DNA from: Takakia lepidozioides
Lineage: Eukaryota; Plantae; Bryophyta
Reading direction: 5' to 3'
Assembly: GCA_030704615.1 (NCBI GenBank)
Contig: JAKLZA010000118.1
Location: forward strand, 1 to 7,196
DNA: 7,196 bases
The position numbers and the translations under genes are program-made. Under the pieces are notes generated by a model that worked only from the letters and a program-made list of their open reading frames with translations, was not told where the DNA came from and did no database searches. Of the stretch, positions 1 through 7,196 are shown in pieces; the first letter of the stretch is position 1, and each line of letters starts with the position of its first letter.

Positions 1-300
1 ACTTTCTCTGTGAACTCAGGGTGCAGGCTGGGACACATTGTGTGTAAGAAGGTCTCCTTGTGGATCCCAGGAAAGACCGAGTCCATTAAAGCCTCTCCAC
101 CACCGGGGACTGTTAAAAGCACGGAAATTCCTTGGGCAAACCAGTTATTACAGGAGATTTGTCAAAAGGTATGCACAAAAATAGCAGCACCATTGAGCAA
201 ACTACTGAAGAAAGATGCAGTGTTTGTCTGGACAGCTGAATGTCAAGGCATTTGAGGAACTTACACTGTCAGTAAACAACTACACCTGTGCTGATTAACC
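1..300 (+). other. Reverse transcriptase C-terminal (thumb/connection) region
   Basis: LGHIV, FLGQTSYYRRFV, IAAPLSKLLKKD..F.W...CQ and PVL motifs spread over several frames. Confidence 0.9.
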
Positions 301-317
301 CTCACTGGCATGTAGTA

Positions 318-676
318 TTCCATGTTCACTGCGATGCATCAGGAGAAGCGTTGGAGCGGTGTTAGCCCGAATGTTACAGGGAATATAGATTCACCTGTGT
401 ACTATGCTAGCCGGTTGATGAACAGTGCTGAGAGGAACTATAGCAACGAAAGAGAAGCATTGGCAATGATCTATGCAGTGAAGAATTCAGGCATTACCCT
501 TTTGTTGGGCAAGAAGTTTATGTTCTATGTGGATCACCAGCTCTGATATACTGGTAAACCAAACCTCTGATAAGCGGAAGAATAGCAAGATGGTTGATAT
601 CTTGCACGAGTTTGAGTTCGAGGTTGTTTACAAGCCTGGGAGACTGCATCTTGTGGCGGATCATTTGTCACGATTG
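318..676 (+). other. Ty3/Gypsy RNase H domain
   Basis: Catalytic motifs CDAS (330-341), EREALA (448-465), YVDHQ (526-540) and VADHLSR (653-673). Confidence 0.92.
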
Positions 677-769
677 TCAAAAGGAGAACCAGCCACATGA
701 ATAGATGATCAATTACCAGATGCGAGTCTCTTTGCAGTGGAGGTGCAGGGAAGTGCAGATGACTGGTTA

Positions 770-2010
770 GATTGGCAGTGGCCAATCAGATACTACCTTG
801 CTCATGGTCAGTGCCCACCTAGTTATGGTAAGGAGCAGAGGAAGAGAATCGCTATCAAAGCTTTACCTTATACTATGGTAGGAAGCAGAATGTATAAGTT
901 AGGACCTGATGGAGTACTAAAACGATGCTTGTACCACCATGAAGTAAATAAAGTTTTGGCGGAAGTTCATAAAGGAGTGGCTGGAGGTCATTTTGGAGAA
1001 GAGACTACCAGTAGAAAGATACTACTCGCAGGATACTGGTGGCCTACTTTGTTCAAAGATGTACACGAGTATTGTCAGAAGTGTGATGAATGTCAGAGGC
1101 TAGGACCTTTGCAGAGATCTGGAAGGATGGCCTTGCATCCTACAATGCCTACGGAACCATTTCAGAAATGGGGACTAGACTTTGTTGGACCAATTAACCC
1201 ACCATCCAAGAATACACGAAACAGGTACATAATTACAGCCACTGATTATACTACAAAGTGGGTGGAAGCTAAAGCTTTGAGGGACAACACAGCCAAGTCC
1301 ACAGCAAGGTTCCTGTACGAGAACATACTTACACGATTTGGCTGTCCCTTAGAATTTATCAGTGATCAAGGAAGTCACTTCATGAATGAGACCATTGAGT
1401 TGTTGACTAAAGAGTATGATTGTGCATAGAAAGAGTACAACATATTACCCACAGGGTAATGGGCAGGCAGAGGCTACCAACAAAATACTATGTACTATCT
1501 TGGCTAAGATAGTCAATGCAAACAGAACGGATTGGGATACAAAGCTGCTGACAGCTTTTGGTCATACAGGACTTCATATAAAGTCACCACTAAGTATACA
1601 CCATTCCAATTAGTTATGGTATGGAAGCCTTACTTCCAGTGGAATTCCTGTTACCTACCATGAGAACGGAGTGGGGAAAAAGAATGGAATTGCAAGACTC
1701 CATCAAGGTCAGGAAACATGAATTATACCATGTGGAAGAAGTACGTGCTGATGCAGCTGATAATATGACCAGAATTCAGATGAAGCGAAAGGAACAGTTG
1801 ATGAAGGCAAAGTTAAAGACTTTTAAGACGGGGGATTTGGTTCTATGGTTGCAAGAAGAAAGGAAAGATTCAAGCTTCTAAGCTTAAATCACCATGGAAA
1901 GGACCTTATGTCATACAAAAGATGTATGATAACAACACCGCCATGTTACAAACCATTAACAAAGAAATGCTGGGAAGAGTCAATGCAAATAAGTTGAAGG
2001 GGTACAGTGG
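770..2010 (+). other. Integrase (HHCC zinc finger, rve core, GPY C-terminal module)
   Basis: EVH-x6-HFG...CDEC zinc finger; D at 1178 (WGLDFVGP), D at 1364 (ISDQGSHF), E at 1470 (NGQAEATN); W-K-G-P-Y at 1895-1909 followed by VNANKLKGY. Confidence 0.95.
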
Positions 2011-2149
2011 TATCCATGACAAACCCTTGCAGCATGATTTGCATGTTGAACCGCAAGAGCAGTCACGGGCTGCACCAGTGTTACGAACGGAGTATGGAGC
2101 ACTTGTCGCTAGGCCCAGCATATATGACCAGGGTGGGCAAAAAAAGTGA

Positions 2150-2473
2150 CACAGCCTATCACAGCCCAACAAGGCAAAAAACAGCCTATCACAGCCAACA
2201 AGGCAAAGCACAGCCTATCAAGCCCATCAGCAAACACAGCCTATCACAGCCCATCAAGGAAAAGCACAGCCTATCACGCCCATCAAGGCAAAGCACAAAC
2301 TATCACAGCCCATCACAACGTGACACAGCCTATCACAGCCCAGCACGGCGCACACAGCCTATCACAACCTACCACAGCGTGTCACAGCCTATCACAGCTT
2401 ACCACAGTGCATCACAGCCTATCACAGCGTAACACAGTATGACACAGCCTGTCACAGCTCAACACAGCCTACT
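2150..2473 (+). repeat. Internal tandem array: ~33 decamers (ACAGCCTATC type) arranged as 11 ~30-bp higher-order units
   Basis: ACAGCCTATC or a close variant starts at 2151, 2181, 2210, 2236, 2266, 2295, 2325, 2354, 2384, 2414 and 2444, each followed by two variant decamers (e.g. ACAGCCCATC, AAGGCAAAGC). Confidence 0.97.
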
Positions 2474-2499
2474 AAAGTTACACGATCCATAGAATCAGT

Positions 2500-2830
2500 G
2501 ACAAGTGGACGCATAATAACTTCAGGAAAATGGCTGACGGAAGAGGAAACGGAAATTACTTTAAAAATAGACACGTGGAGGTCAGGGCGCGACACACAGC
2601 CGAGAAGGAAGTGCAAGAACAGGTGTCAAAAAGAAAGAGGACAAGAACGGCCGTCAAAAGGGATGAAAGGCGGGCCCATTAATGAATACGGAAAAAGGGA
2701 AACGGAACGAACGGCAAGTACAGAAAAGCGGAATTCTTGTCACATGTGTGATCCTAGTGGACTATCCAACAGGGAAAGTCCACTAAAGAAATAAATCTAA
2801 AATCCAGTCACAGCGGATACAGCCAATAGA
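2500..2830 (+). promoter_or_regulatory. Putative internal promoter for the accessory ORF
   Basis: G-box GACACGTGG 2570-2578, site-II-like GGGCCCA 2672-2678, four AACGG (2548, 2646, 2701, 2710), CACATGTG 2741-2748, AT-rich AAATAAAT ~2789-2796, CCAAT 2823-2827. Short motifs only; function is inferred. Confidence 0.4.
2755..2785. other. Inverted repeat / stem-loop
   Basis: TAGTGGACT (2755-2763) and AGTCCACTA (2777-2785) are exact reverse complements; after an A/A mismatch TCC pairs with GGA, leaving a 5-nt loop. Confidence 0.8.
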
Positions 2831-3178
2831 AAACCAGAGAAAGGATCAAGAAAATGGAGGGAAATTGAGCGCAAGAGGCGGCGTCGTTCTGAGTAGTACG
2901 GGCGTCTCGACGGGACAGACCATCAATGCTATAGCTTGGAAACTATGGAGGAACTAACAGACTATACGCTCGCAATATTACTTACGCAGTGGCATAGACA
3001 CGAAAGGACAGAGCGGAGCTTTTCTCTTGAGCGATGCTTGCAAGCCCCGCAGGCTTACAAGAAATTACCCATAGCTTTCTGCGGCAACCATACGTTTATG
3101 CTTTGTGCACTACAGGCATTCCTGCAGTTGTTACAGCCAAAAAGTTCTGTGAGTCTAAAATGAAGAGAGAGTGAGAGA

Positions 3179-3790
3179 ATGGAGGAAATCAGGGTGAAGA
3201 GCACCACAATTCTGCAGAAACAAACAATTGCTACCCCACAGGCGATACAGATACTGGAGGAGCTGAGATTGCAAGGATTGCAAAGCCTAGATTGGACACT
3301 ACACCATAGACAGTACATGTTACAATTTTTGCAGAACTTTGAGCCAAGGACAGGAACAACAACGGTGAAGTGAAGGGAGTTGAATTAATGATTACTCCCC
3401 TATACCTCCAGCAATTGTTTCGATTGCCAGCAGGTCAGGTGCATGTGGAGGAACACAGGGCAAGACTGCAAATAGGGGACTTATTCCAAGAAGGGAGTTT
3501 CTTTAAAACTCAGGGTTATGCTTGTACCAAGGCTGTGTACCCAGGGCTTAAAAGAGGTAGGCCAGGTATTGAACGTTCTGATTGCCATGAAACAGAACCA
3601 ACAGTATTTGAGCAGATCCTTCACGGAGGAAATACTCAAAGGCTGAAGGGACAAGAGGTACAATGGGCGGACATAATGTACAACGCACTGGTAGAGGAGA
3701 TGAAAAGATTACAAGGTACTACCGCAAAGTCTCCTATCATAGTGTCTGGCCCAATCATTGCTCAAATAATCCTTGATTCTGGCATACTTG
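3179..3790 (+). other. PMD (plant mobile domain)/Transposase_32-like N-terminal domain of ORF-X
   Basis: Repaired sequence MLQFLQNFEPRTGTTTVKGVELMITPLYLQQLFRLP follows, without gaps, the remembered PMD pattern L..LVERW.PET.TF....GE.TITL.DV..LLGLP; downstream VQWADIMYNALVEEM..GPIIAQII matches the W-helix end of these domains. By-eye comparison only. Confidence 0.55.
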
Positions 3791-4545
3791 ATGCGCAAGA
3801 AAGAAAGGAAATGGGAGTGTTTGAGCCAGAAACAACTGCAATGGAAGAGCAAGGCTCTTCACACAGTGAGGGTGGACTAGCAGGGCAACCCGACTAAGAC
3901 TAGGCAGAGACGGGGAAAGACTGTGTAGTGGCGGATCCACTGGCTTCACGGATTCCGCATGATAATGTTTCCCAAGCTCATGGCAGGAAGGGGCACAGCA
4001 GCACAGAGAAATGCTATTACTGGAAGCAGGACCTTCAGAGAGGGAGGGGAAGTTACTTCTGTATCACAACCATCACAGCCAACTGATCGACTTGTCACAA
4101 GGTCACAAGTTATCCATGCAGCTCAACCAGAAATAATTGATTTGGAAAAGAAGGGTTAGATATTCCAACTACAGAACAGATAGTGGCAGAAATGGAGAAG
4201 GGGGACCTTCTCTATGAATATTCTGGTCTGGTCAAGGAGACAGAGATCCCAGAGGTGCAACAGTTGCCCAAGGGAAATCCTGAGGTGCATATAATACACA
4301 CACCTGTGTCGGAGGTACCACAGGCGGAAGGTCATGACACTGTAGCACCGGTGATAGATGAAGTAGTTCAGGAAGAAAATCCGGTGGGACAATGGCCTGA
4401 ATGGTTCGTGAGACATCACACTGTTGAAGATCAGGAGGAACAGCAGCAACCTCACCATGATGACCCTCAACAGGCAATGCTGATGAGTTCCATAGGCAGG
4501 ACACTTAATTTGTTGGGGACTTATGTCAAATCCCATGTTCCAATT

Positions 4546-5520
4546 ACCCAATTGACAGCCTTGAGAGAGGAACTCAGGAAGGAGTTTGAGGCTCGACTAG
4601 CCACTGAGTGTGCAAACAAGGTCGATGAAGAGGTCACTCTCAAGATGAAGCAGGACTTGGGAAATACAGAAATGGCTTTGCAATTGGCCAAGGAACAATT
4701 GATTGAGGCAGGCCTCGCGCAAGACCAGTTGCACGAAGCACATAAGCAACAGCTATACCAAATGCAGGTGCAGCATGAAAGCAAGTTGCAAGAAGTGAAT
4801 GCACTACATACGGAGTTGCAGACAGTGCATGACAGGATGGCGATACAATGTGCTACATTACAACTATGCTTGACCAATCTACAAAAGAAATAAACAGTCA
4901 AGCGGAAAAATGTACGAAGGCAGAAGAAAAAAGAGAATGTTGAGCAAATGAAGCTCATTGTCGATATGAAGAATACAATCTGTCGCAATGAAGATACTTT
5001 CAAGCAATACAGGCAGATTGAAGCTGATCAAGAGAAGCACATCGTGGAGTTGCAACAAACCATCATGGCCAATAGAAATGAAATCGCGGTCAATAACAAG
5101 GCTTGGAAGGAAGCCAATAATCTACTTGCTGCTTATGCGCAATTGGTTGAACCTCAGGCGAAGCGCATGGAGGCTTTACAACAGCAGTTGGAATTGTACA
5201 AGCTAAGAGAGGAGCAAACTCTCAGGGGAACCACAAGCAACTTGGTGGATAACAGCCTTATGCAGGTCTGGTTAGCACAAGGGCCAGTAGAGGGCAAAGC
5301 ACCACGAAAGCTCACCCAAAGCGAGATGAATGAGCTCAGGCTGCAGGTGCAGAACATTGCCACAACTACTATAGACAATGTCTATAGTAGGATAGCAGAG
5401 TTACAAGAGGATGTAGACGGACTGCAGACTCAAGTGGAAGACCTCACTTCAAACATCGACAAAAGAGTCTATATCCCTCAGGAACAGCTAATGGCTTCTT
5501 ATTTACAAGCCAGAACTTTG
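4546..5520 (+). other. Long coiled-coil segment of ORF-X
   Basis: E/Q/K/L/A-rich, Pro/Gly-poor sequence with heptad-like hydrophobics (LQEVNALHTELQTVHDRM; IAELQEDVDGLQTQVEDLTSNI) over ~320 codons. Confidence 0.8.
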
Positions 5521-5559
5521 GCTTTTCAGTCTTCACAGGAGGGCAGGAGATGAGATGCA

Positions 5560-6723
5560 ATGATACAAGAGCCAGTACCACCACCACCACAACAAGTCAC
5601 TGTACAAGTAGCTGAACCTGTGGTTACTACAACCACACCACAGCCACCACAGCCGGAGGTATGGGGCAATGCCGCTTTTAACCCACCTAAAACTCCAGCT
5701 GCAAGGGAGTACAGTAGGGCTATGATTATGCCCTTCAACCAAATTCCCATCATGTTGGATTTGGCTTGGAAAGAATTTAGTCCTCCGCAGTCATTCGCAC
5801 ATTACTACCAAATCATGCGTATTTGGCTGCCAGTGGCAACTAGGACTAAAGTTCTTCCGAACAATCGACATATTGAAGATCATCACTTTGCACAATACTG
5901 GCACGAGGCAGGTACCATGTTGAGGGAATTGATTGCTTTCCAGGTTGTACATGGACTCATTTATACCAAGACCAAGGAGGTAGCAAGTATTGTCATGGGA
6001 TGCGGGTTATACTACGCTGCTTGTTTTCTGGTACGTTACCACATTGAGCAACAAAAGATGCAAACACGCTTTCTGAGTTATTCCAGTGGAGATCATTGGG
6101 TATTACCTTCGGTGCCACCTCATATGTACCTATATGACCCAAAAGTTATGATGCAAAAGGATTCTCAAATTCGTTCATGGTTTCAAGCGGCCTGGAACCA
6201 TTTGTCAACACAGAAATTCGGCATTGATGACATTTTCTATAAGGGACATGTGGCATGGAAATACTTGCACGCTGCACCAGTAATTGGTACCCCACTCACC
6301 TGGACAGACAAGGAGCTCAGTGTCTACACCAATTTTGCTGTTCAGCGGTTACACCAAGTTGTAAAATACAAACTTCCAGACATGGTAGGACAGCATTGTA
6401 TGCCCCAGATGATTCCACAAAAAGTTCGAAAATTAAAACACCTGAGAGGCGATGAGGATTTTGATACAACTGTTTCTTCACCGAATTCTTTTGACATGGG
6501 AGAAGACTATGCAGTTCAGATGGCAGAGAAGAAGCGACGGGGGTCTCCTATGCCGGAAAGGTTACCTCGATATCAGCCTCCAGAGGGCCTCACTTATCCA
6601 GGTAGTGATCAACCATCTCCGTCAACCAGAGACAGACCTCGGGCTCGTACACACAGTCCGCCACGAAACTCTCAACGTCAAAAAGGTGCTCACTCACAAA
6701 GGTTTGCTAATCGAAATCAGTAA
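5560..6723 (+). CDS. Intact 387-codon frame: P/Q/T hinge, aromatic-rich globular domain of unknown function, basic R/S/P tail (probably the C-terminus of ORF-X)
   Basis: Longest uninterrupted ORF in the window; protein-like composition; KKRR at 6529-6540; ends 21 nt before the PPT. Confidence 0.8.
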   Translation: MIQEPVPPPPQQVTVQVAEPVVTTTTPQPPQPEVWGNAAFNPPKTPAAREYSRAMIMPFNQIPIMLDLAWKEFSPPQSFAHYYQIMRIWLPVATRTKVLPNNRHIEDHHFAQYWHEAGTMLRELIAFQVVHGLIYTKTKEVASIVMGCGLYYAACFLVRYHIEQQKMQTRFLSYSSGDHWVLPSVPPHMYLYDPKVMMQKDSQIRSWFQAAWNHLSTQKFGIDDIFYKGHVAWKYLHAAPVIGTPLTWTDKELSVYTNFAVQRLHQVVKYKLPDMVGQHCMPQMIPQKVRKLKHLRGDEDFDTTVSSPNSFDMGEDYAVQMAEKKRRGSPMPERLPRYQPPEGLTYPGSDQPSPSTRDRPRARTHSPPRNSQRQKGAHSQRFANRNQ

Positions 6724-6724
6724 A

Positions 6725-6738
6725 CCGTGAGGACACGG
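6725..6738 (+). other. Pre-PPT mini-hairpin CCGTG-AGGA-CACGG
   Basis: Perfect 5-bp stem with AGGA loop, immediately upstream of the T-run and PPT. Confidence 0.7.
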
Positions 6739-6744
6739 CTTTTT

Positions 6745-6757
6745 GAGGGGGAAGGGG
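6745..6757 (+). promoter_or_regulatory. Polypurine tract (plus-strand primer site)
   Basis: GAGGGGGAAGGGG preceded by TTTTT and followed by TAA then TGT. Confidence 0.9.
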
Positions 6758-6828
6758 TAATGTTAGAGGACTGTCGGGGACTTAGACACTTATACGGGAT
6801 CTGTAGGGTACCCTTAATTTTTGCACAG

Positions 6829-6852
6829 ACTGAGACCAACACTGAGACCAAC
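6829..6852 (+). repeat. 12-bp perfect tandem duplication ACTGAGACCAAC x2
   Basis: Copies at 6829-6840 and 6841-6852. Confidence 0.9.
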
Positions 6853-6895
6853 AGGAGCCTTAGGGGTGACAGCAGCGCACTGTAGAGGGGGGTTA

Positions 6896-7190
6896 CACAG
6901 CCCGTCACAGTAGTCACAGCCGACACAGCCAACACAGCCTGTCACAGTAGTCACAGCCGACACAGCCAACACAGCCCGTCACAGTCATCACAGCCGACAC
7001 AGCCAACACAGCCCGTTGCAGTCGTCACAGCAAACACAGCCGACACAGCCCGTCACAGCCGACACAGCCCGACACAGCCAACACAGCCACACAGCCAGTC
7101 ACAGCCCGACACAGCCAAACACAGTCGCACAGCCAGTCACAGCCCGTCACAATTTCACACAGCCAGTCACAGCTTGACACAGCTGTCACG
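6896..7190 (+). repeat. LTR tandem array: ~31 CACAG(CC) monomers of 8-10 bp, the first 16 forming four 37-bp higher-order units
   Basis: Unit CACAGCCCGT-CACAGTAGT-CACAGCCGA-CACAGCCAA and variants start at 6896, 6933, 6970 and 7007; mostly 10-bp monomers from 7044 on. Confidence 0.97.
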
Positions 7191-7196
7191 ATCATA

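Follow-up and report, generated by a model that had tools for sequence, protein, structure and literature searches.

Two arrays of a common CACAGCC motif, upstream of a conserved accessory gene and in the long terminal repeat, in a decayed Ty3/gypsy retrotransposon of Takakia lepidozioides

The stretch of DNA considered here, referred to below as the window, is contig JAKLZA010000118.1 of Takakia lepidozioides (Bryophyta; GenBank assembly GCA_030704615.1, positions 1 to 7,196 of the forward strand, 7,196 bp). It is the 3' portion of a dead, non-chromoviral Ty3/gypsy long terminal repeat (LTR) retrotransposon, of which gag, the reverse transcriptase (RT), the primer-binding site and the second LTR lie outside the window. 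Three parts of it are the subject of this account, namely a long sense gene between pol and the 3' LTR, here called ORF-X, the non-coding spacer that separates this gene from pol, and two arrays of a short repeat with the core CACAGCC, one at the beginning of that spacer (array A) and the other within the LTR (array B). The positions of these and of the remaining features are collected in Table 1.

Table 1. Features of the window and the evidence on which each was placed
Feature	Position	Strand	Basis
RNase H remnant of pol	322..543	+	Pfam RT_RNaseH, E 3e-9
Integrase H2C2 zinc-binding region and rve catalytic core	701..1426	+	Pfam (Integrase_H2C2 and rve at 737-1426)
Remaining integrase C-terminal region, broken by frame changes	1407..2149	+	tblastn to L002, L003, L129, L130 and L131; Pfam
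Array A, ~33 monomers of 10 bp, core CACAG(C)(C), 30-bp higher-order unit	2146..2471	+	Tandem Repeats Finder, motif counts, monomer alignment
Non-coding spacer upstream of ORF-X, putative internal promoter and leader	2472..3178	+	CpG statistics, self-comparison (promoter function predicted)
ORF-X, sense accessory gene of ~1180 codons, pseudogene here	3179..6723	+	Open reading frame list, comparison with relatives
ORF-X N domain, conserved block G-x-x-V-x-W ... Y..L..E ... K	3179..3894	+	BLASTP, hidden Markov model
ORF-X middle, helix-rich, coiled-coil-like, Pro/Gly-poor, heptad-like hydrophobic spacing	4500..5550	+	Sub-threshold Pfam coiled-coil matches; crude heptad count
ORF-X C domain, helical throughout in a weak model	5680..6480	+	Protein searches, AF2 pLDDT 54.8
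Polypurine tract GAGGGGGAAGGGGTAA	6745..6760	+	Sequence reading; 22 bp past the ORF-X stop codon
3' LTR (U3) start, first bases TGTTAGAGG	6761..7196	+	Start as in L131, near L005; cut by the window end
Array B, ~31 monomers of 9-10 bp, core CACAG(C)(C), 37-bp higher-order unit (10+9+9+9)	6895..7185	+	As for array A

Exact copies of CACAGCC number 43 in the window against an expectation of 1.75, a count reached by none of 200 shuffled sequences, and 15 of them lie in array A and 22 in array B, all array copies being on the + strand. Tandem Repeats Finder resolved array A into 32.9 copies at a period of 10 and 10.8 copies at a period of 30 (77% matches), with further periods of 59 and 85, and array B (6895-7183) into 30.7 copies at a period of 9 and 6.7 copies at a period of 37 (86% matches). 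All 29 monomers scored in array B, and nearly all of those of array A, have the pentamer CACAG, and the invariant core is better given as CACAG(C/T)(C). The variable positions 8-10 of the monomer differ between the two, being TAT, CAT or AAG in array A and CGT, GA, AA or AGT in array B, and the arrays as a whole are approximately 70% identical over 284 bp with flanks that have no similarity. An initial annotation of this DNA had described two arrays with the same core, the same orientation and similar monomer counts but different higher-order periods, and had concluded that neither was a simple recent copy of the other; the repeat analysis and the motif counts agree with the description, and the differing spacer bases and higher-order units bear out the conclusion. 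Relic copies of the motif (2595-2601 and 2806-2826) are found in the interval from array A to ORF-X. That at 2806-2826 is a motif pair with 90% identity to a unit of array B, and a CCAAT sequence overlaps it. The hexamer GCCGAC occurs five times in the window, always in array B and on the + strand, and is absent from array A; it resembles the DRE/CRT-like (dehydration-responsive element/C-repeat) core.

Array A begins at the pol stop codon (2147-2149), after a purine run at 2131-2146, whereas array B begins 134 bp inside the LTR and the window ends 11 bp beyond it. The placing of array B within the LTR, also claimed in the initial annotation, depends upon the identification of position 6761 as the LTR start, which is made because the polypurine tract immediately precedes it and because the same start is found in the LTR pair of a related element (L131), where both LTRs are visible, are 88% identical and thus delimit the boundary. 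The LTR of the window begins TGTTAG, those of L131 TGTTAGG and those of another relative, L005, TGTTGG. A 12-bp repeat in two copies lies at 6829-6853, within the LTR and upstream of array B. A purine run followed by TG is found upstream of both arrays (2131-2149 and 6745-6763), with GGGTGGGCAAAAAAAG followed by TGA immediately preceding array A and the polypurine tract followed by TGT 134 bp before array B, and this context might bear on the copying of the repeat between the two sites. A hairpin, CCGTG AGGA CACGG, occupies 6725-6738, between the ORF-X stop codon and the polypurine tract.

An important consideration in assessing the significance of the two arrays is whether a motif is also shared between spacer and LTR in related elements, since the initial annotation had predicted that the two would match within a family and change between families. 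The number of 8-mers common to spacer and LTR was compared, for each family, with 500 coding controls. For the window, with a CACAGCC array at both sites, there were 39 shared 8-mers against 8.3, and none of the 500 controls reached this figure. A similar result was obtained with L131, in which 32 were shared against 18.5 and again none of the 500 controls reached the observed value. The motif in this element is a different one. Both LTRs of L131 carry an array of 6.7 copies of a 26-bp unit built on CGGTCC...GGACCG, and within 320 bp of the spacer upstream of its ORF-X there are six CGGTCC sequences, one of them a complete palindromic unit of the LTR type; in the whole locus CGGTCC is found 40 times against 7.8 expected. 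The similarity between spacer and LTR in L131 is limited to the motif units, without extended homology, which points to sharing at the level of sites rather than of an extended copy of the LTR. The alternative that the spacer is a partial copy of the LTR is accordingly unsupported in L131, where motif units alone are shared.

The remaining relatives gave widely varying results. Short family-specific repeats just upstream of ORF-X were also found in L006, with about ten units of the ATAGCGGTTTC type, and in L130, with five copies of GACACGCG; the LTR of L006 is not on the contig, and in the 530 bp of LTR or 3' flank visible for L130 there was neither a match to the spacer repeat nor an excess of shared 8-mers. 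Spacer arrays were absent from L002, L007 and L003. L002 has short repeats only in the LTR/3' flank and no 8-mer excess, L007 has a 28-bp repeat in three copies in the LTR/3' flank and a marginal excess (77 shared 8-mers against 50, with 34 of the 500 controls reaching this number), and L003 has no array in that part of the LTR that was seen and no 8-mer excess. L005 has no spacer, the reading frames abutting one another, and carries a 65-bp repeat in 2.6 copies in the LTR/3' flank, likewise without an 8-mer excess. The predicted combination of a match between spacer and LTR with a change of motif between families thus holds in two families, the window and L131, the latter having been found blind, and is not universal; it was not seen in L002, L005, L003 or the visible part of L130, and L007 is marginal. 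Since several families have ORF-X without them, matched arrays are not a constant companion of the gene. Relatives with ORF-X but without arrays were among the observations that the initial annotation had named as refuting its proposal, although the relatives that lack spacer arrays or a match are all distant ones.

The second feature of the region between pol and ORF-X is its base composition. CpG is strongly depleted in the window (observed/expected ratio, o/e, 0.35-0.43) and TG+CA is in excess, which fits an old, methylated copy. Within the spacer, from 2501 to 3100, there is an island in which CpG has been preserved, the o/e being 1.04 for CpG and 0.98 for TG+CA compared with 0.39 and 1.41 elsewhere in the window; the island has 33 CpG where the background rate would give 12.3 (Poisson P 7e-7). 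Similar islands occupy the pol/ORF-X spacers of L006 (6750-7350, o/e 1.1-1.5 against 0.05-0.3 nearby), L002 (3151-3900), L007 (6500-6950) and L003 (11500-11950), so that islands with an o/e of about 1.0-1.5 are known from five divergent families including that of the window, with or without arrays; the genomes of L130 and L131 are not depleted in CpG, and these two elements give no information in this respect. Because L002 and L007 have the island without arrays, the island does not depend on the arrays. A TATA-like sequence, TTTAAAAATA, lies at about 2559-2572 in the window, and others are found at ~7966 in L131 and ~1468 in L130. In the window and L131 the box follows the repeats and precedes the ATG; in L130 it precedes the repeats. 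The retention of an island across divergent families is most simply explained by a promoter or other protected regulatory region, and the islands and the TATA-like boxes together suggest that ORF-X is most likely transcribed from an internal promoter of its own, situated in the spacer that follows pol. The promoter postulated upstream of ORF-X in the initial annotation has thus gained the CpG-preserved island between array A and the gene, its function as a promoter being a prediction as before. A block, GGATCAAGAAAAT, just upstream of ORF-X is common to the spacers of two very divergent families, those of the window (2841-2863) and L130 (1386-1408), with 87% identity over 23 nt, and is weakly significant (E 0.005 in a tiny database).

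ORF-X itself most likely extends from the ATG at 3179 to 6723. The copy in the window is damaged: its frame shifts near 3343-3373, stop codons interrupt it at 3895, 3901, 4084, 4891 and 5551, and the stretch 4087-4140 is disrupted. It was searched as separate stop-free pieces. The N domain is found again after the integrase in seven further families from public assemblies, and its conserved block is common to the reading frames at this place in L002, L007, L005, L006, L131 and L130; the N-terminal piece matched the L002 frame with BLASTP E values of 2e-5 and 1e-4, and a hidden Markov model built from the window, L002, L007, L005 and L006 gave 24.2 bits with the held-out frame of L131 and 11.9 bits with that of L130, when the best of 1000 shuffled sequences gave 7.5. 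The C domain is common to the protein P0001 (locus L001) and to the L002 clade (P0122-P0126; profile search). An exhaustive search of 1.84 billion representatives with the intact last 387 residues of ORF-X produced P0001 as its single, weak match (E 1.9e-5), and P0001 ties ORF-X to a clade of proteins that are encoded after the integrase in other Ty3/gypsy elements (C domain, tblastn 1e-18; P0001 against L002, BLASTP 2e-10). The same 387-aa end found nothing in a word-based protein search and had no record in an exact-protein look-up. The relatives are distant, their ORF-X domains being ~20-35% identical, and scans of metagenome and viral contigs, made both for ORF-X and for the array, yielded no relatives. 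As the initial annotation supposed, ORF-X is a real accessory gene, conserved in its lineage according to the BLASTP, profile and hidden Markov model matches, and not a chance open reading frame (ORF).

As far as sequence comparison goes, the ORF-X proteins are an undescribed family, outside Pfam and without relatives in the PDB, that is made up of an N domain, a long middle part resembling a coiled coil and a C end that varies. In the window the C domain is followed by a basic, Ser/Pro-rich tail (6481-6720), whilst the ORF-X of L130, which is intact and has 1048 codons, has an acidic tail in place of a C domain of the window type. Two basic clusters resembling nuclear localisation signals (NLS) are present in the window protein, one of them being KRKNVRRQKKK at ~4900-4932. 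A 25-nt near-perfect palindrome lies in the coding region at 5366-5390 (self-BLAST, 96%). No Pfam match was obtained for the stop-free pieces or for the frames of the relatives beyond sub-threshold coiled-coil noise, a PDB sequence search with the C-domain profile gave nothing, and neither a DNA-binding nor any other known domain was found in ORF-X or in seven relatives by Pfam and PDB searches, the structure models being too poor to exclude one. Those models (AlphaFold2, from shallow alignments) had a mean confidence (pLDDT) of 54.8 for the C domain and 42.3 for the N domain, and a Foldseek comparison of the C-domain model with the PDB gave no match below E 2. The initial annotation had called ORF-X a protein of nuclear type and had cited the PMD proteins (MAIN/MAIL1) as chromatin regulators related to transposable elements; an identity with PMD (PF10536) was rejected, there being no match at E <=0.1 for the window pieces or <=1 for the relatives.

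Two other identities for ORF-X were tried and rejected. A reading of the TRP28/Retand type fails in that antisense ORFs of at least 74 aa match neither Transposase_28 nor any other Pfam family. As for an env-like protein, the maximum hydropathy over 19 residues is 1.7, which is borderline, in the window ORF-X and <=1.28 at the aligned positions of the relatives; there is thus no conserved transmembrane segment, nor a Pfam match, and the term does not fit. Athila and Bagy2 are known to carry sense accessory ORFs (aORF-3S, also called 'env-like') in the interval from pol to the 3' LTR (PMC7264820), and ORF-X resembles them in position, orientation and conservation within a lineage, its homologues lying at the same place in L002, L007, L005, L006, L130 and L131. 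It differs from them in its lack of a conserved transmembrane segment or Pfam match and probably also in its expression, which would be from an internal promoter rather than by splicing. In L130 the integrase stop codon is followed directly by a run of 41 A (with two T) at 1298-1338, then by the TATA-like box, the five copies of GACACGCG and ORF-X, and this poly(A) tract could hint at the mode by which the gene was acquired.

The assignment of the element to Ty3/gypsy is based on the order of pol, in which RNase H is followed by the integrase (H2C2 and rve) as in the Metaviridae type, and on a polypurine tract that abuts a 3' LTR beginning with TG. The pol frame is interrupted by frame changes and stops, and a Pfam scan detected no chromodomain in the C-terminal region of the integrase. 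The nearest integrases in a collection of 5.8 billion proteins are only 50-72% identical, those that can be named belonging to a fern, Adiantum nelumboides, and a pine, Pinus taeda; judged by these matches, the host would probably be a land plant outside the angiosperms. Members of the L002 clade (L002 47-1800; L007 1703-4523) have the N-terminal zinc-binding (H2C2) region of the integrase several times in tandem, with repeated GPYWWPT blocks, before the catalytic core.

We tentatively suggest, as a proposal that falls a little short of an even chance, that the arrays are reiterated upstream sites common to the LTR promoter and to an internal promoter of ORF-X. Array B would serve the promoter in the unique 3' (U3) region of the LTR and array A that of ORF-X, both being RNA polymerase II promoters that would answer to the same sequence-specific factor, whether a host transcription factor or a product of the element. 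One ancestral CA-rich repeat would have been placed at both sites, the repeats probably having been formed, as is usual for such repeats in plant LTR retrotransposons, when slippage or aberrant strand transfer accompanied reverse transcription (PMC7004042), and each copy of the array would then have been amplified independently to give a different higher-order unit. Promoter activity, the binding of a factor and the route of array formation are all things that we infer. A role for the arrays as cis-acting sites is supported by their being non-random and strictly co-oriented and by the invariance of the core whilst the spacer bases vary. U3 regions are known to hold reiterated enhancer elements.

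A number of observations weigh against this proposal. To our knowledge, tandem repeats at such positions are hypervariable and have no demonstrated function. L002 and L007 possess the CpG island without a spacer array and L005 has no spacer at all, and, as described above, a motif common to spacer and LTR was not seen in L002, L005, L003 or the visible part of L130. L006 has two arrays of a single palindrome-containing motif (ATAGCGGTTTCAAACCGCGA), of which that at 6826-7070 is in the spacer upstream of ORF-X; the other, at 3495-3660, is in frame within the gag-pol linker with a period of 30 bp, which is not a recognisable promoter. The internal promoter is deduced from the retained CpG and the TATA-like boxes only, the window takes in no 5' LTR and no more than the first 436 bp of one LTR, and no other copies of the window's family were found in protein, metagenome and viral contig searches. 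The arrays of a dead copy, moreover, may have changed since its insertion.

The main rival to the two-promoter proposal is that both arrays are neutral, hypervariable by-products of slippage or aberrant strand transfer, without function, and have their core in common because one seeded the other; we regard this as rather unlikely. In Tat, Ogre and Retand elements tandem arrays are a common feature of the region downstream of pol; they vary in sequence and length, and illegitimate recombination or abnormal strand transfer has been given as their origin (PMC7004042), and about half of the Retand clusters have tandem arrays in this position (PMC11963269). The window resembles these Tat-lineage elements in having short, family-specific and probably replication-born arrays both between pol and the 3' LTR and inside the LTR (PMC7004042, PMC11963269), but its internal array separates pol from a sense accessory gene, instead of lying in a 3' untranslated region, and has a core in common with the U3 array; it also differs from Retand in having no antisense TRP28 ORF, the likeness having been judged without the RT, which lies outside the window. 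The neutral explanation is also favoured by the absence of spacer arrays from L002, L007 and L005, by the array in the gag-pol linker of L006 and by the occurrence of short-period arrays of the CACAGCC type in unrelated DNA. A metagenome scan for three spaced copies of CACAGCC gave 120 loci, of which five labelled human gut metagenome (L014, L015, L055, L108 and L115) were excluded from every comparison; beyond the repeat itself, no relation to the window was seen in any of those compared. The richest of these loci, L048, has at 555-2073 a 9-bp array of a GCCACAGCC repeat with higher orders of 18-213 bp, which is apparently of coding type and unrelated, and the bare motif is not diagnostic of the element because it is present in DNA such as this. 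Neutrality does not account readily for a core that is invariant, in strict orientation, in both arrays whilst the bases between are variable, for the recurrence of the match between spacer and LTR with another motif in a second and very divergent family, or for the position of array A beside a CpG-preserved island that is conserved across families.

A more specific version of the two-promoter circuit was put forward in the initial annotation, in which ORF-X would itself bind the CACAGCC arrays, that of its own promoter as well as that of U3, so activating both or shielding them from silencing. ORF-X would then be a self-encoded trans-regulator in a plant Ty3/gypsy lineage of the fern or gymnosperm type, with a methylation-resistant internal promoter, family-specific arrays there and in U3 and co-evolution of protein and arrays. 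We consider this improbable. In VANDAL transposons the motifs targeted by the VANC anti-silencing proteins accumulate as tandem repeats, which vary from one related transposon to another (PMC5735166, PMC10398659), and the window and its relatives similarly combine a transposon accessory protein with family-specific motif arrays in non-coding DNA (CACAGCC in the window, CGGTCC in L131, ATAGCGGTTTC in L006 and GACACGCG in L130). The likeness is one of cis-elements only, since VANDAL is a Mutator-like DNA transposon and not an LTR retrotransposon, ORF-X matches no Pfam family and the arrays are not found in all families with ORF-X. The closest precedent amongst retroelements for the circuit proposed is foamy-virus Tas, which binds to an internal promoter as well as to that of the LTR (PMC4929722, PMC8670036); here too there is an accessory gene 3' of the structural genes, and in the window and L131 a common motif lies at what would be an internal promoter and an LTR promoter, the promoter and the binding being predictions in the present case. 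Foamy viruses, however, are animal retroviruses, there is no homology, and the sites of Tas are not long tandem arrays.

Besides these two precedents, binding by ORF-X would be in keeping with an arrangement, seen in two families that differ in their motifs, in which the gene lies 3' of pol and one motif is present both ahead of it and in U3, with the island beside array A, as would be expected if the region stayed unmethylated, and with the NLS-like basic clusters in the protein. Against it are the lack of any known domain in ORF-X or seven relatives, the structure models being uninformative, the presence of the CpG island in the array-less L002 and L007, the several ORF-X relatives without a match between spacer and LTR, and the fact that L130 is entirely without a C domain of the window type. 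Close sister families of the window, in which co-variation of protein and motif might have been followed, were not found in the protein, metagenome and viral contig searches.

A role at the level of RNA seems very unlikely. The arrays would in this case lie in the genomic RNA, internally and in the 3' U3, as unstructured CA-rich platforms for RNA-binding proteins concerned with export, stability, packaging or the control of splicing, and a parallel exists in the direct repeats flanking src in Rous sarcoma virus. The strict same-strand orientation is consistent with this, as is a strong strand asymmetry (C 37-40%, G 15-18%), and RNA folding found no structure in either array beyond that of shuffled controls (z -1.29 and +0.83), which would suit single-strand binding. 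There was, however, no match in Rfam and no positive evidence was obtained, and the motif of L131 is palindromic, as expected of a site in double-stranded DNA. It is scarcely credible that array B is host satellite lying beside a truncated element rather than part of the LTR, for although the window stops 11 bp past the array and holds a single LTR, the array has the motif and strand of array A, begins 134 bp after a polypurine tract and an LTR start like that of L131, ends inside the window at about 290 bp, and has counterparts in the tandem repeats that relatives also have early in U3.

Arrays such as these are of a kind already known from plant LTR retrotransposons, and the position of ORF-X is that of a sense accessory ORF. 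Two features are new: a spacer that has kept its CpG across families and precedes an accessory gene which is itself conserved, and the presence of the same motif in spacer and U3, recurring in two families with different motifs. Accessory genes are common in plant LTR retrotransposons and almost all are without known function. The means by which retrotransposons evade or adjust silencing are likewise a standing question. The ORF-X locus, with its relatives, provides a system in which to ask whether a plant retrotransposon runs a two-promoter circuit, be it host-driven or self-encoded. Were the arrays to prove neutral, they would still be a clear case of one repeat seeding two independently amplified arrays in a single element. 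If ORF-X were indeed a self-encoded trans-regulator, for which the prospects are slender, it would be a retrotransposon counterpart of VANC or of foamy-virus Tas.

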